Shown: positions 35,373 to 54,538 of the stretch, in pieces
Layout: each line of letters starts with the position of its first letter
Numbering within the stretch: the stretch's first letter is position 1
Source: Pecten maximus
Lineage: Eukaryota
Direction: 5' to 3'
Length of the DNA: 64,000 nt
NCBI RefSeq assembly: GCF_902652985.1
Contig: NC_047032.1
Location: forward strand, 3,844,001 to 3,908,000
Translations under genes and position numbers: made by a program
The notes under the pieces: model-generated
Databases searched by the model: none
What the model saw: the letters and a program-made list of their open reading frames with translations, nothing else
What the model was told of the DNA's origin: nothing

Positions 35373-36109
35373 ATCAAGATCAAAAACTGTAAAAAGTTCA
35401 AAATGTAAACATTGATATATGTTTCGTCGGGAGTATGTGGGTTTAATTAATATGCTATAACATCTTTATTATTTTCAAGAGCATTATAAAAATATGACAC
35501 AAGGCAGTCTGCTGAATTTGTCCTATTGTCATTTATTCATTGCAACTATTCCATCATCATTGTGTGCAAAACAGCAATGTTTGCATGGTGATCCTATTCA
35601 GTTCGTAAAAATTGCCTCCAGGCCAGGGGAAAGGGAAGTAGAATGACCATAGAATTTTTAGGTCACCTAGCTGCGACAAAGTCTCAAGTGTCCTATTCTA
35701 ATTGCCTTTTGTCCTTCATCATACATTGTGCACACACACAAAATTGGTTCAGAAGCTTCCTTTCGGGAGGGGAACAAATTTTGGTAAAGATGCATGTGAA
35801 GTTCACAAAAATGTATGTCAGGGTCAAGGTCATCATGTCAATGACAATTTTTTTTTATCTTTTTACTGATAAACATTTTGTTATGACCTGATGAAGCAAT
35901 ATTTAGGTATTTAGAGTTCAAGGTCATATCTAAGGTGAAGGTCAAGGTTAGGTTTTTGTAGCTTTTCACTGATGAACATTTTATAACGCGTTGAAATGTT
36001 TCAAACAAAAAGTCAACTGACTAAAGGTCAAGGTCACTGTGAAGATGATCCACCTTGTAGTCTTGGTGTCGTTAATGTGTAAGACTTGTTTATCATTACA
36101 GGAGTCACC

Positions 36110-36281
36110 ATGAAGACGCTCCACCTTGTCGCCGTGGTATTGGTCGCATATGGAGTACAAATGGTGCTGTCTGACTCTGAGAATGGATCTTCGTTTCCAG
36201 ACCTAACAAGCAATGGATGGGCTTTTATTGCTTGTACTGTGGCAGTTATAATATTTGGATGGCTCTGGTGTCGCTTCACAG
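36110..36281 (+). CDS. exon 1: signal peptide + short spacer + transmembrane helix
   Basis: ttacag|GAGTCACCATG (good Kozak context); MKTLHLVAVVLVAYGVQMVLS-DSENGSSFPDLTSNG-WAFIACTVAVIIFGWLWCRF; CAG|gtatct. Confidence 0.75.
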
Positions 36282-51200: not shown

Positions 51201-53343
51201 AGGTGTGAAAGAATGGGAGAAACGAGAAAAAGAAATTATTGCAAAACTTTGTGGAAATGAATCTGAGTCCAATTATCTGGTCATTACAATTCGTAGTGGA
51301 ATGATTAATTCTTTAAGTGGCCTGGGAAAATTATTTACTAAAGAAAACATTGTTGACCTTAGCCAGTACAAAGAAGACAAAGAAAAACTTGCATTGTTAA
51401 AGTTGTATCAACCAAAAACTGAATTTGTTAAATGGACAGATGATGAGGAGAAACAGATTGTGGCCTCGGCCCCAGACATTGGGTTTCCACAGTGTTGTAG
51501 ATTATTTAGGGACACACCTAGTTTACAAACAGAGAGAGTCAAATTCTTTGAAAGACCTTTGCATTATTTTAAATCCTCTTTATCTAAATTAGAAGACGGG
51601 AAATTTTATGGTCTGCTGTATCTGTTTCTCAAAGGCGGCTCAGTTCTAGAACATGATTTAGACCCTTTTATTGAAAATATTGAAGAAAATGAGGAAATGA
51701 AAGCAGCATTTGCTTTTGATGTAGTAAAAGTAAACCCAACATCTGAGCTTATTTACAAAAAAGAAAAGAAAGCAGAATTTGTAAAGGAGTCATTAGAATG
51801 CCTTTTTGGTTGGCTGGTGAGAAAAGAATCTACACTGTGGAAAAAATGTCCCTTTTACAAATTCAAACACGACTCCATTGAGGAAACAGTGGCACTTCTG
51901 TATGGAGAGAAAACTCCCATTGGCTACATACAGAATTGTCCCAGAAAGTTCCTCAGTTATGTAACTACAACAAAAAACACCCCAAACAGAATAGTTATAT
52001 CATCTGATAATCAAACCAATGCCATGTATAAACGTATAGTGACAGAGTTTCAATCTGTTGATCCTGAAAGTTACTGGTATTTGAGTGAGTATGAATATTT
52101 ATTTAGATTAGATGTATGGACAGACACCCTGTTTTTACAGGGTTTTATCAGATGGCTAAGTGGTCAGAATGATGACAAAAACTTACACCAACTGATAAAA
52201 TGTGCCTTGTTAAATGAAGCTTGCTCTGCTGGTTTAGAAGATCATTTCTCGTATCTCCTTTCTGTGGGTGCCACACCCGACAATAATACACCGTTTATTG
52301 TAGTGGAGGGTGGGAGTGTACGACTACTGACACAAATACTAATGTATGGCGTCATTCCTACAGCGAAGGCACGCGAGTCACAATCATCACATTATACTGA
52401 AGATATCAATGTCCTACACGAGGCTTGTTTGTTTGAGAGAGAAGTGATGGTGACCATGTTGTGTGACACTTACCCAGACTTGGTACATGAGACTGATCGC
52501 TATGGACGAAGCCCGCTCCATCTTGTGGCACGGACAGGAAACGTTGGTATATTTCAGACAGTGGAGAGAATGATACTTAAATCTTTGTGTAGAGTTGAGG
52601 ATGTACAACGTAAGTGTGAGATAGAAGATGGTCGTGTTGTACATAGGAGTTGTGTGTGTGGTCAGTACATGTCACAGTTAGTGTACGAGGACGGGTTTAC
52701 AATATTACATCATAGTTGTATGTATGGACACAGGGTGCTTAGTTTATACCTGTGTGAGTGTTACCCAGCACTAACTACAGCTTTAACTAACGACGGGTGG
52801 ACAATATTACATTGGAGTTGTAGTCAGGGACACAGGGAGCTTAGTTTAGAGCTGTGTAAGTTATACCCAGCACTGACTACAGCTGTAGATAAGTACGGGT
52901 CTACAATATTACATCGTAGTTGTAGGTGGGGACACAGGAAGCTTAGTTTAGAGCTGTGTAAGTTATACCCAGCACTGACTACAGCTGTAGATAACGACGG
53001 GTGGACAATATTACATGTTAGTTGTAGTTGGGGACGCAGGGAGCTTAGTTTAGAGCTGTGTCAGTGTTACCCAGCACTAACTACAGCTGTAACTAACAAC
53101 GGGTATAATTGTCTACATCACATAGCCAGAGAGACATCAGATGTAGACATGTTCACTGATTGTGAACGTCACGTAAAACAGTACGTAGAGAAAACAGGAG
53201 GTAAGTATGACATCACGACCTTACTTACTAAACGTGGGAAATCTGTTTTAGACCTGGCAAAGGAACAGACAGAGTGGGAGAGAATGTTGAGGAAGTTAGA
53301 TAACCCATTGTATGATCATCTTGTCGAGGTGTTTACTAAGTAA
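36110..53343 (+). CDS. NLR-like protein: signal peptide-TM-Ig-DZIP3-like HEPN-coiled coil-STAND (nSTAND3-like) NTPase-ankyrin repeats, 1237 aa
   Basis: Exons 36110-36281, 37979-38278, 41110-41718, 42846-42908, 43884-43967, 46989-47018, 50888-53343. All GT-AG and phase 1; total 3714 nt, open throughout. Confidence 0.8.
36775..37616 (-). mobile_element. HINE-type non-autonomous element fragment (same family as 48258-49879)
   Basis: ~150-bp internal repeats (gggctgacccccaggggcctg); terminal ccaggtgagcgatacaggccctctgggcctcttgtt. Confidence 0.75.
37615..37987. repeat. ~44-bp tandem repeat containing copies of the Ig-exon splice acceptor
   Basis: tttaaattttcag|atgagccta and its variant tgttcag|acaagccta repeated ~8 times; the last copy is the true acceptor. 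Confidence 0.85.
37979..38278 (+). CDS. exon 2: immunoglobulin (I-set-like) domain
   Basis: EPTVEI...VEVGQQAELRCSV...VTW...LII...DEGEYVCTV...TKLTLV; 300 nt, phase 1-1. Confidence 0.88.
38342..39366 (-). mobile_element. HINE-type element (same family as 58657-60768), ~4-5 internal 156-bp units; further fragment at 39715-39970
   Basis: Reverse complement of 58657-60768, including the terminal palindromes. Confidence 0.85.
41110..41718 (+). CDS. exon 3: DZIP3/hRUL138-like HEPN domain
   Basis: TNFARICRLVVD...DLDVSLLYILLRNL...PPHKNGWG..P...DRSLSANIDRLRSQRNEAYGH (Rx4-6H); 609 nt, phase 1-1. Confidence 0.88.
41970..42817. repeat. 38-bp intronic satellite (~22 copies)
   Basis: tatcactatacctttgacaggtgtgtatggatctttgt, with 31-bp deletion variants. 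Confidence 0.95.
42846..42908 (+). CDS. exon 4: coiled-coil heptads
   Basis: ttttag|GGGAAATC...AAAG|gtatgt; 63 nt, EICDVKQRQDEMTTDMDNLK. Confidence 0.78.
43884..43967 (+). CDS. exon 5: coiled-coil heptads
   Basis: ttttgacag|GCACT...GCAG|gtataa; 84 nt, TVDAVSGDVDAVKKDVSDMKQ. Confidence 0.78.
44625..45232 (+). repeat. 89-bp tandem array (~7 copies) derived from a tRNA-like/SINE head
   Basis: First unit starts gctagctcagtcg (A-box-like); each unit carries ggttcacac (B-box-like). Confidence 0.8.
45278..46648. repeat. 49-bp intronic satellite (~28 copies, 42-bp variants)
   Basis: gacccaaagtctagtccagcccctgggaatttagttcactgtcaggatt. Confidence 0.95.
46989..47018 (+). CDS. exon 6: 30-nt micro-exon
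   Basis: ttttacag|GAAGGGATCCTAAGTTGACAGCTATGATAG|gtgagt; phase 1-1, RDPKLTAMI. Confidence 0.7.
48258..49879 (-). mobile_element. full-length HINE/Helentron-type non-autonomous element
   Basis: Hairpin agctcacctggtccgaaggactaaggtgagct, (ccgt)n microsatellite, ~8 internal ~150-bp repeats, terminal caggtgagcg...ggccctctgggcctcttgtt. Confidence 0.85.
50362..50518. repeat. 157-bp near-perfect palindrome, probably the end of a non-autonomous DNA element
   Basis: ~65-bp arms around the centre ataaaccgc-ttc-gcggtttat. Confidence 0.85.
50888..53343 (+). CDS. exon 7: STAND NTPase (nSTAND3-like) + helical/winged-helix region + ankyrin repeats
   Basis: cttgcag|ATACA in frame with ORF 51049-53343. Walker A IIQGNSGDGKS, Walker B VIYFDDIFG, IGFPQCC, YKFKHDSI; ankyrin repeats GRSPLHLVARTGN and GxTILHxSCxxGH; AATAAA at ~53396 and ~53463. 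Confidence 0.92.
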
Positions 53344-53689
53344 ATGTGTTAATTATTCACACTTCTATACACTAACTTGTGTAACATAATGACAAAATAA
53401 ACAGCAACGAACAGAACACTGTGGAAACCTTTTGTGGGGTCATCTTGTCAAGTTTATTTGTAAATAAAAGTACTTAGAAATATTCATACATACCTCTTTA
53501 CCTTCTGTACATTAACTTGTATAACATGGTGTATAATTAAACAAAGATTAAGTTGAAGAAACAATTTATTTTCATCATTGTTCACAAAAACGAACAAAAG
53601 TCGTGAGTTTTAGAAATTTTCTTCGGCGATAGGGGGTGTCCTCGGGTAGGTCCGAGTGAAAGGAAGGTGGTGATACAAATAACCGCCTG

Positions 53690-54538
53690 GTACGGCCCAA
53701 CACAGACTGGAGGGTAGGGTAGGGCCCAACACAGACTGGAGGGTAGGTAGGGCCCAACACAGACTGGAGGGTAGGGTAGAGCCCAACACAGACTGTAGGG
53801 TAGGGTAGGGTAGGGCCCAACATAGGCTGGAGGGTAGGGTAGGGCCCACGCAGACTGGAGGGTAGGGTAGGGCCAAACACACAGACTGGAGGGTAGGGTA
53901 CGGCCCAACACAGACTGGAGGGTAGGGTAGAGCCCACCACAGACTGGAGGGTAGGGTAGAGCCCAACATAGACTGGAGGGTAGGGTAGGGCCCAACACAG
54001 ACTGGAGGGTAGGGTAGGGCCCAACACAGACTGGAGGGTAGGTAGGGCCCAACACAGACTGGAGGGTAGGGTAGAGCCCAACACAGACTGTAGGGTAGGG
54101 TAGGGTAGGGCCCAACATAGGCTGGAGGGTAGGGTAGGGCCCACGCAGACTGGAGGGTAGGGTAGGGCCAAACACACAGACTGGAGGGTAGGGTACGGCC
54201 CAACACAGACTGGAGGGTAGGGTAGAGCCCACCACAGACTGGAGGGTAGGGTAGAGCCCAACATAGACTGGAGGGCAGGGTAGGGCCCAACACAGACTGG
54301 AGGGTAGGGTAGGGCCCAACACGGACTGGAGGGTAGGGTAGGGCCCAACACAGACTAGAGGGTGGGGTACGGCCCAACACAGACTGGAGGGTGGGGTACG
54401 GCCCAACACAGACTGGAGGGTAGGGTAGGGTAGGGCCAAACACAGACTGGAGGGTAGGGTAGGGCCCAACACAGACTGGAGGGTAAGGCCCATCTCTGAC
54501 TGGAGGGTAGGGTAGGGCCCAACACAGACTGGAGGGTA
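53690..54538. repeat. 29-bp G-rich satellite (~29 copies) downstream of the STAND gene
   Basis: agactggagggtagggtagggcccaacac; explains the three repetitive minus-strand ORFs. Confidence 0.96.

Follow-up and report, generated by a model that had tools for sequence, protein, structure and literature searches.

LOC117316762 of the king scallop: a predicted membrane-tethered, RNase-armed STAND protein from an expanded bivalve immune-type family

We describe a gene of the king scallop Pecten maximus, LOC117316762, which lies in the window analysed here, a 64,000-nucleotide stretch of a chromosome-scale contig (C18:3844001-3908000). It is an intact and transcribed gene that already exists as a RefSeq model and is unstudied. 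The reading that we favour, with moderate confidence, is that it encodes a membrane-held cytosolic switch protein of the order immunoglobulin (Ig)-HEPN-nSTAND3-ankyrin (ANK), armed with an RNase and serving innate defence or cell suicide. The gene is a lineage-specific variant within a large bivalve immune-type family known computationally since 2013, and the core idea of an RNase-armed, NLR-like protein has already been published as a prediction. What is new here concerns the N-terminal part. A cassette coding for a signal peptide (SP), a transmembrane (TM) segment and one Ig domain splices into a pre-existing acceptor in the 5' untranslated region (5'UTR) of the HEPN exon, with the ancestral ATG retained, and this cassette is far less diverged between paralogues than the HEPN exon that it precedes.

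Bivalves have no adaptive immunity and possess very large, fast-changing sets of NLR-like genes. HEPN domains of the DZIP3/hRUL138 type, fused to ankyrin, NACHT, CARD, Death and LRR modules and expanded in oyster, were tabulated by Anantharaman (2013; PMC3710099, Table 1), where an RNase-based defence was proposed by analogy with RNase L. Kaur (2021; PMC8195603) reported expansions in bivalves, among them TM receptor-like forms that carry STAND, HEPN and ankyrin modules, as well as Crassostrea gigas proteins that combine HEPN with Ig repeats. In a diploid pearl-oyster genome, Takeuchi (2022; PMC9646362) counted 202 proteins with DZIP3-type HEPN domains, more than 50 of which have the HEPN domain N-terminal to NACHT, and suggested that they degrade viral or transposon RNA. 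The expansion of HEPN-STAND-repeat genes in bivalves, which the original prediction (an earlier reading of this DNA from its letters) had mentioned, is therefore documented in all three papers, and its remark that a TM and Ig N-terminus is an unusual addition also holds, as the SP/TM and Ig cassette differs from the published cases. Literature on 'nSTAND3' or Pecten-specific work on this HEPN-STAND family was also looked for, and nothing specific was found.

The exons were found by direct reading of the sequence together with tblastn mapping of the RefSeq protein P0001; a naive scan for phase 1-1 exons overlooked exons 4-6, which the protein mapping recovered. Domain and homology searches were run exon by exon, with the full-length protein represented by the database entries P0046 and P0001. 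The last exon matches 'uncharacterized protein LOC117316762 isoform X2' (P0001, 1209 amino acids) at 100%, and the same search returns dozens of paralogues from P. maximus, Mizuhopecten, Argopecten and Ylistrum. Isoform X1 (P0046, XP_033727421/2, 1237 amino acids) falls in the same cluster as X2, and in the RefSeq models X2 differs from it solely by skipping the 84-nt exon 5. The parts of the gene are as follows, in window positions.

36110..36281, + strand: exon 1, 172 nt, with the start ATG and two hydrophobic segments, then R-F-T after the TM segment
37979..38278, + strand: exon 2, 300 nt, phase 1-1, one complete I-set/Ig_3 domain (Pfam, about 37984-38256)
41110..41718, + strand: exon 3, 609 nt, with an 11-residue linker, a retained ATG (41142-41144) and HEPN_DZIP3 (about 41307-41687)
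41508..41528, + strand: RNEAYGH, the Rx5H motif of the HEPN domain, from a motif search in exon 3
42846..42908, + strand: exon 4, 63 nt, phase 1-1, a cassette for a charged helical linker
43884..43967, + strand: exon 5, 84 nt, phase 1-1, a cassette that shows a heptad-like D-A-V-x-x-D-V pattern and is absent from X2
46989..47018, + strand: exon 6, a 30-nt phase 1-1 micro-exon
50888..53343, + strand: exon 7, 2456 nt including the stop codon (53341-53343), with nSTAND3, a helical and hairpin region, and the ankyrin solenoid
about 50932..51396, + strand: nSTAND3 P-loop NTPase in exon 7 (Pfam)
51001..51024, + strand: Walker A, GNSGDGKS, in exon 7
51160..51180, + strand: Walker B, YFDDIFG, in exon 7
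51292..51294, + strand: invariant sensor-1-like Arg in exon 7
about 52192..53340, + strand: ankyrin solenoid in exon 7, about 10-11 repeats
52690..53104, + strand: four near-identical 102-bp ankyrin repeats in exon 7

The seven + strand exons (36110-53343) sum to 3714 nt, that is, 1237 codons and a stop. A script check found all six introns to be GT..AG and in phase 1, with no internal stop in any of the seven exons. Their translations are exact substrings of P0046, and neighbouring pieces are exactly one split-codon residue apart. The seven GT-AG exons and the open frame of 1237 codons claimed in the original prediction are thus those of XP_033727421. As it had stated, RNEAYGH (in exon 3) and the two Walker motifs (in exon 7) are intact, and the four Pfam families that it named for checking (HEPN_DZIP3, nSTAND3, ankyrin and I-set) are all matched.

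Exon 3 matches HEPN_DZIP3 (PF18738) over profile positions 22-142 of 144 with 93.2 bits, where the cut-off is 27 (E 1.6e-26); on the complete X1 protein the score is 89.2. The Rx4-6H motif takes the form R-N-E-A-Y-G-H, with an Asn following the Arg. When 21 HEPN exons of this genome (26-99% identity) are aligned, N134 does not vary, and at least 90% of the sequences keep R133 and H139 (exon 3 numbering); R128 and R130 are likewise invariant. The AlphaFold2 model of exon 3 is all-helical, with a predicted local distance difference test (pLDDT) value of 86. A homodimer prediction from two copies of exon 3 gave a score of 0.00 against a mark of 0.32, a result that neither supports nor opposes dimerisation.

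The NTPase is recognised with similar ease. The nSTAND3 profile (PF20720), whose cut-off is 27.2, is matched with 88.1 bits (E 6.2e-25), over profile positions 1-149 of 155, and the STAND motifs GNSGDGKS, VIYFDD and VITIR, the last with its Arg after the next strand, are all present. Across 20 homologues of exon 7, G41, G43 and K44 of Walker A, D93 of Walker B and R135 are invariant. The beta-alpha-beta order of the core is visible in the AlphaFold2 model of the exon, and residues 163-357 are modelled as helices and hairpins with pLDDT 57-86. By sequence, nothing significant was found in the PDB for the NTPase half. With PADLOC, it matches PDC-S73, a candidate prokaryotic defence NTPase (E 1.8e-11), along with two marginal matches, and no Avs model (Avs1-5) is matched.

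The remainder of exon 7 matches several ankyrin families of Pfam, among them Ank_2 with 90 bits, and the solenoid (exon 7 residues about 435-817) superimposes on the ankyrin domain of Espin-1 with Z 27.1 over 321 aligned residues. The four 34-residue repeats encoded at 52690-53104 vary mainly at a few positions near an H-x-S-C-x-x-G segment. Differences around this segment are as expected of a variable binding surface, judging by the sequence pattern. Neither NACHT nor LRR has a Pfam match at E up to 0.1, and no kinase or KEN profile is matched in Pfam. The label 'NLR-like' given in the original prediction can therefore be kept for the effector-STAND-repeat layout and dropped as regards the family: with nSTAND3 instead of NACHT and ankyrin instead of LRR, the protein is NLR-like in layout and lies outside the NLR family in the strict sense.

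We infer membrane topology, ligand sensing, oligomerisation, RNase activity and an immune role for this protein, and together they would work as follows. The body of the protein facing the cytosol would consist of the Ig domain, the DZIP3-type HEPN domain, a short helical linker that is alternatively spliced, the nSTAND3 NTPase and the ankyrin solenoid. If the protein works like other STAND proteins, the ankyrin array would be the sensor of a ligand and the NTPase a nucleotide-dependent oligomerisation switch. Oligomerisation would bring the HEPN domains, with their intact R-N-x4-H, together to cleave RNA, and the cutting of RNA adjacent to the membrane would lead to innate defence or cell suicide. 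That an ankyrin ligand acts through STAND oligomerisation on a HEPN RNase is a reasonable inference by analogy, and it is the same mechanism as published for the bivalve family (PMC3710099, PMC8195603, PMC9646362).

The same architecture could also work with a HEPN domain that does not cleave, serving instead as an RNA-binding or protein-interaction module, so that the output of the oligomer would be scaffolding or signalling. In the literature examined, no DZIP3-type HEPN domain is demonstrated to be an RNase, the His of the motif is missing from some paralogues (H to R in L023, H to Y in L024), and the neighbouring Ig domain could act as an adaptor. On the other hand, most paralogues retain R-N-x4-H, at a ratio of nonsynonymous to synonymous divergence (dN/dS) of about 0.15, and in Pinctada the Rx4-6H motif is kept in 194 of 202 family members (PMC9646362). 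We regard a non-cleaving HEPN domain as a possible but unlikely explanation.

A different question is whether an RNase-armed sensor of this kind would be directed at pathogens. It might instead control transposons or endogenous RNA, take part in allorecognition or in surveillance against transmissible cancer, or execute stress-induced cell death. Lineage-specific expansions and haplotype variation are compatible with any conflict system, transposable elements and infectious tumour cells are mentioned in PMC9646362 and PMC8195603, and the locus itself is rich in expressed repeats. The present observations fit this reading and the immune one alike. Relatives of LOC117316762 carry DED, CARD and Death domains, and these point to immunity or apoptosis in general. 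A role outside pathogen defence is rather improbable in our view.

We now consider the membrane part. Exon 1 contains two hydrophobic stretches, at amino acids 1-22 and 34-57, whose Kyte-Doolittle means over 19 residues are 1.89 and 1.97. The first (core 1-21) is signal-peptide-like and the second holds the TM segment (about 37-54, window 36218-36271); between them lies a polar loop of about 15 residues (22-36) with an N-G-S sequon at N25. Both segments are kept in all cassette-bearing paralogues, and the loop motif G-S-S-x-x-x-L-T-S-N-G-W is kept even in a distant subfamily on C8. Judged by this hydrophobicity, the two segments most likely hold the protein in the membrane, either as a cleaved signal peptide followed by a TM helix or as a two-helix hairpin. 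The Ig domain encoded by exon 2 (P0046 amino acids 60-150; Pfam I-set 31.9 bits, Ig_3 32.4 bits, from the complete Ig exon) follows the TM segment, and under either topology it would therefore be cytosolic, on the same side as HEPN and STAND. An ATP-dependent STAND switch must sit on the cytosolic side of the membrane.

The order of a type I surface Ig receptor, in which the Ig domain stands between signal peptide and TM helix, is thus absent, the Ig coming after the TM. With at most about 15 residues exposed, the protein would be a tethered cytosolic sensor and no surface receptor, and the word 'receptor' in the original prediction goes too far. The kind of Ig domain agrees with a cytosolic placement, as far as its sequence relatives tell. 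Its nearest relatives outside the subfamily are found in a Mizuhopecten six-Ig protein (P0047, 46-50% identity), which has no signal peptide and also gives a weak DED match, and in another Ig-nSTAND3-ANK protein (P0076), where the Ig starts at residue 2, again with no signal peptide.

The connection between this N-terminal part and the HEPN exon was followed in RNA contigs of four runs from four studies, mapped on window positions 36000-41900. The exons are covered in all four runs and the depth is zero on unique intron stretches (37773-37969 and 40334-40924), so the runs behave as RNA. The joint between exons 1 and 2 (36281|37979) is found in three runs, in one case in a 486-nt contig with 180 and 279 nt flanking it, and the joint between exons 2 and 3 (38278|41110) in all four runs, and hence in four studies, with sides of 28-39 nt. 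A contig match that ends at 41719 with 160 further letters supports the use of the exon 3 donor, and words of exon 3 are present in RNA runs of seven studies. Exons 1, 2 and 3 are thus spliced to one another, which makes the TM and Ig exons part of the HEPN gene. The original prediction had named transcripts that assign these exons to a separate gene as a refuting result, and the contigs show the opposite. The domain order SP/TM-Ig-HEPN-linker-STAND-ANK that it proposed is correct.

Several points weigh against the favoured reading of a membrane-held, RNase-armed switch. On the structural side, a Foldseek search of the PDB with the exon 3 HEPN model gave no match at E <= 0.001. In the exhaustive search with VIA-align, the top match was the HEPN domain of Csm6 with Z 7.9 over 114 aligned residues, a value within the range reached by chance for helical bundles (Z <8). 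HEPN domains are enriched among its best 50 rows, with at least nine further entries, including AbiF, Roquin, Cas13, 2hsb, 1wwp, SO_3166, HepS and YutE; the predicted model fits the HEPN fold, and Z values are not decisive for helical bundles. Ankyrin matches filled both fold-search lists for exon 7, and the fold of the NTPase and winged-helix part is not comparable from them. As for splicing, the shorter side of the joint between exons 2 and 3 is just 28 nt in three of the four runs and 39 nt in the fourth. The junctions from exon 3-exon 4 to exon 6-exon 7 rest on RefSeq models, canonical splice sites and the reading frame, and the skipping of exon 5 on the RefSeq isoform X2.

The remaining points of this kind concern the membrane anchor. 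The topology was read from Kyte-Doolittle hydropathy, which by itself cannot assign it, and one low-depth contig, unspliced over 40866-41124, reads through the acceptor of exon 3; a transcript initiating in intron 2 could give a soluble form from the retained ATG (41142-41144), which is still in frame. The hydrophobic segments might then be no stable anchor, either because they form an organelle-targeting signal or because the main product is soluble and starts at this internal ATG. Against this stand the exon 2-exon 3 joint in all four runs, the purifying selection on exon 1, and the conservation of its loop motif as far as the C8 subfamily. In addition, the cassette-bearing paralogues on C19 and C3665 have lost the internal ATG, so that in those the long form would be the functional one. 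A soluble or organelle-directed product appears to us quite improbable as the main outcome.

The weakest alternative, a gene-model artefact in which the TM and Ig exons form a separate upstream gene, could appeal to the start of most family members at the Met inside exon 3 and to Gnomon models of the family that can be chimeric (P0048 has an internal SP-TM copy), but it is highly improbable in view of the contigs from three to four independent studies that join exons 1, 2 and 3 at the predicted GT-AG sites, the phase-1 introns and open frame throughout, and the same arrangement at about 10 loci.

We next address how a membrane-held HEPN-nSTAND3 protein may have arisen. The genome contains at least 55 HEPN exons of this family. 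The Ig exon and exon 1, by contrast, each have only about 10 close copies, distributed over C18, C19 and small scaffolds, the last of which may partly represent alternative haplotypes. In the protein databases searched, the combination SP/TM-Ig-HEPN-nSTAND3 was found only in P. maximus. The more distant subfamily on C8 combines SP/TM, Ig and nSTAND3, with no HEPN domain, and its version of exon 1 is 57-62% identical.

Ordinary family members begin at a Met followed by A-x-x-Y-x-S-x-x-E-T-x-N-F-A-R. This ancestral start persists in exon 3 of LOC117316762, in frame and eleven codons past the acceptor, and the 11-residue linker of the exon derives from the former 5' leader. In a DNA alignment, the paralogues without the cassette share the acceptor TTTTCCAG, 33-40 nt 5' of their ATG, from which it follows that the ancestral gene had a 5'UTR intron. 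It is the acceptor of that intron into which the cassette exons splice. The internal ATG is gone in the cassette paralogues on C19, and the C3665 copy is without it at the protein level. In one group of paralogues without the cassette (C3006:756k, C19:27.98M, C19:31.3M and C424), the leader upstream of the ATG is also open in frame, so that other N-terminal modules might dock at this acceptor.

The divergence of the modules from the C19 and C3665 paralogues is uneven. At synonymous sites (dS) it is 0.93-1.04 for the HEPN exon, 0.09-0.14 for the Ig exon and 0.20-0.26 for exon 1; this mosaic divergence was examined at the loci L002, L004, L005, L014, L015 and L041-L043. The corresponding dN/dS values are about 0.15, 0.10-0.20 and 0.38-0.55, and by this measure exons 1-3 are all under purifying selection (0.10-0.55). 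In two of three copies, the tract of high identity is limited to the Ig exon plus some 20 bp of flank, and in the third (C19:27.7 Mb) it also covers about 110 bp of upstream intron. The mosaic dS together with the exon-confined tracts suggests either that gene conversion acted on single exons or that the cassette spread late. In a tree of the 21 HEPN exons the backbone is unresolved, and a single origin of the cassette is neither shown nor excluded by it. A search for the donor of the Ig exon found no clear candidate, the closest being multi-Ig proteins without signal peptide at 46-50% identity; giant Ig arrays on C10 and C13 match it at about 30-40%.

As a broader and more speculative proposal, which we put forward tentatively and consider unlikely as a whole, SP/TM and Ig may be a transferable N-terminal module that docks on a shared 5'UTR acceptor, is kept near-uniform by exon-limited conversion or recent spread, and defines a class of membrane-stationed, RNase-armed STAND sensors. 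If this were true, such sensors could be stationed, for example, near sites of viral entry or replication, and exchanging N-terminal modules at a single acceptor would give the family a general route to diversify the location of its sensors.

Some further observations were made on copies of the cassette and on the 5' end of the gene. In P0048 (LOC117332830, on C8), the SP-TM module is internal and its Met, residue 117, comes behind an Ig domain. This entry is probably a merged gene model; the true gene likely begins at Met 117, has the order SP/TM-Ig-nSTAND3-ANK and lacks HEPN. Exon 1 has a second copy on the same strand, about 88 kb further downstream and outside the window (C18:3968415-3968585, 96% amino acid identity), and no close Ig exon was detected beside it. 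RNA contigs over 36000-36129 suggest heterogeneity of the 5'UTR. One of them has 27 letters ahead of 36099, with an AG at 36100-36101 and hence a possible upstream non-coding exon; a second runs unspliced to beyond 36000.

The introns and flanks of the gene contain many tandem repeats, as listed here.

37615..37987, + strand: 43-bp minisatellite of intron 1, 8.5 copies of the intron 1/exon 2 junction
38430-39176 (intron 2), 36809-37461 and 48440-49487: tandem repeats with a period of 155-158 bp
42037-42816, 44629-45232 and 45278-46645: minisatellites with periods of 38, 89 and 49/190 bp, in introns 3 and 5
53689..54538: 29-bp satellite, 29 copies, directly 3' of the gene

Each 43-bp unit repeats the acceptor together with the 9 nt that open the Ig exon, so that eight decoy acceptors stand before the real one (37978|37979). 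Each decoy would meet an in-frame stop within 2-18 codons. The real acceptor alone is used in the RNA contigs, and the depth in the bin 37773-37969 is 0. The same minisatellite is found in introns of paralogues, and it resembles the junction-derived satellites of the PIKfyve gene at the start of the window. Over the intron 2 array the summed depth of RNA contigs reaches about 470,000, which places this array in a very abundant transcribed repeat family. The arrays at 36809 and 48440 have one common unit, in opposite orientation, on either side of the gene; the 38-bp array stops about 30 bp short of exon 4. The 29-bp satellite accounts for the long proline-rich pseudo-frames of the minus strand in the list of open reading frames.

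It is instructive to compare LOC117316762 with its known relatives and analogues. Closest are the paralogues LOC117320370 (P0017/P0042), LOC117317979 (P0004) and LOC117320960 (P0021), which have the same order SP/TM-Ig-HEPN-nSTAND3(-ANK) and are 89-96% identical over the first 160 amino acids; for the last exon the identity is 52-87%. They are found on other chromosomes or on unplaced scaffolds, some perhaps as alternative haplotypes, and their linkers differ in length. With the bivalve DZIP3/hRUL138-like proteins at large (PMC3710099, PMC9646362), the protein shares a HEPN domain placed N-terminally and bearing Rx4-6H, a central STAND module, C-terminal superstructure-forming repeats, large lineage-specific expansions and the prediction of an RNase-armed intracellular sensor. 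Those published cases mostly combine HEPN with NACHT and LRR, TPR or WD40, whereas LOC117316762 has nSTAND3 with ankyrin, and the SP/TM and Ig cassette ahead of HEPN. The Crassostrea expansions (PMC8195603), read as immune or apoptotic sensors, likewise join a TM helix to death-fold, STAND, HEPN and ankyrin modules, or HEPN to Ig. They are built on DED-TRADD-N and a cysteine-rich ectodomain, whereas the scallop protein lacks TRADD-N and DED, has hardly any ectodomain, and carries a single Ig domain N-terminal to HEPN.

Two systems outside the family are alike in layout. RNase L also couples an ankyrin ligand sensor to a HEPN-superfamily RNase that acts on induced self-association, and its ankyrin domain superimposes on the exon 7 solenoid with Z 24.6, as expected for any long ankyrin array. 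It has a pseudokinase and a C-terminal HEPN domain of the KEN type, whereas LOC117316762 has no kinase or pseudokinase, an N-terminal HEPN domain of the DZIP3 type, a STAND NTPase switch and a membrane tether. The prokaryotic Avs/AVAST proteins have the same effector-STAND NTPase-repeat sensor layout, and the scallop NTPase matches PDC-S73. Avs sensors are TPR-like, whereas the scallop gene is a eukaryotic multi-exon gene with ankyrin repeats that matches none of the Avs1-5 models.

Both RNase L and the bacterial Avs-type systems have an RNase for their direct effector. We know of no HEPN-armed bivalve NLR-like gene that has been tested experimentally. The membrane-tethered version described here would offer a tractable way to ask if animal STAND proteins can do so too, and it poses a second question, whether tethering directs a HEPN-STAND sensor to a compartment. 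The capture of the cassette, as read from the sequence comparisons, would illustrate how new domain architectures arise in HEPN-STAND families.

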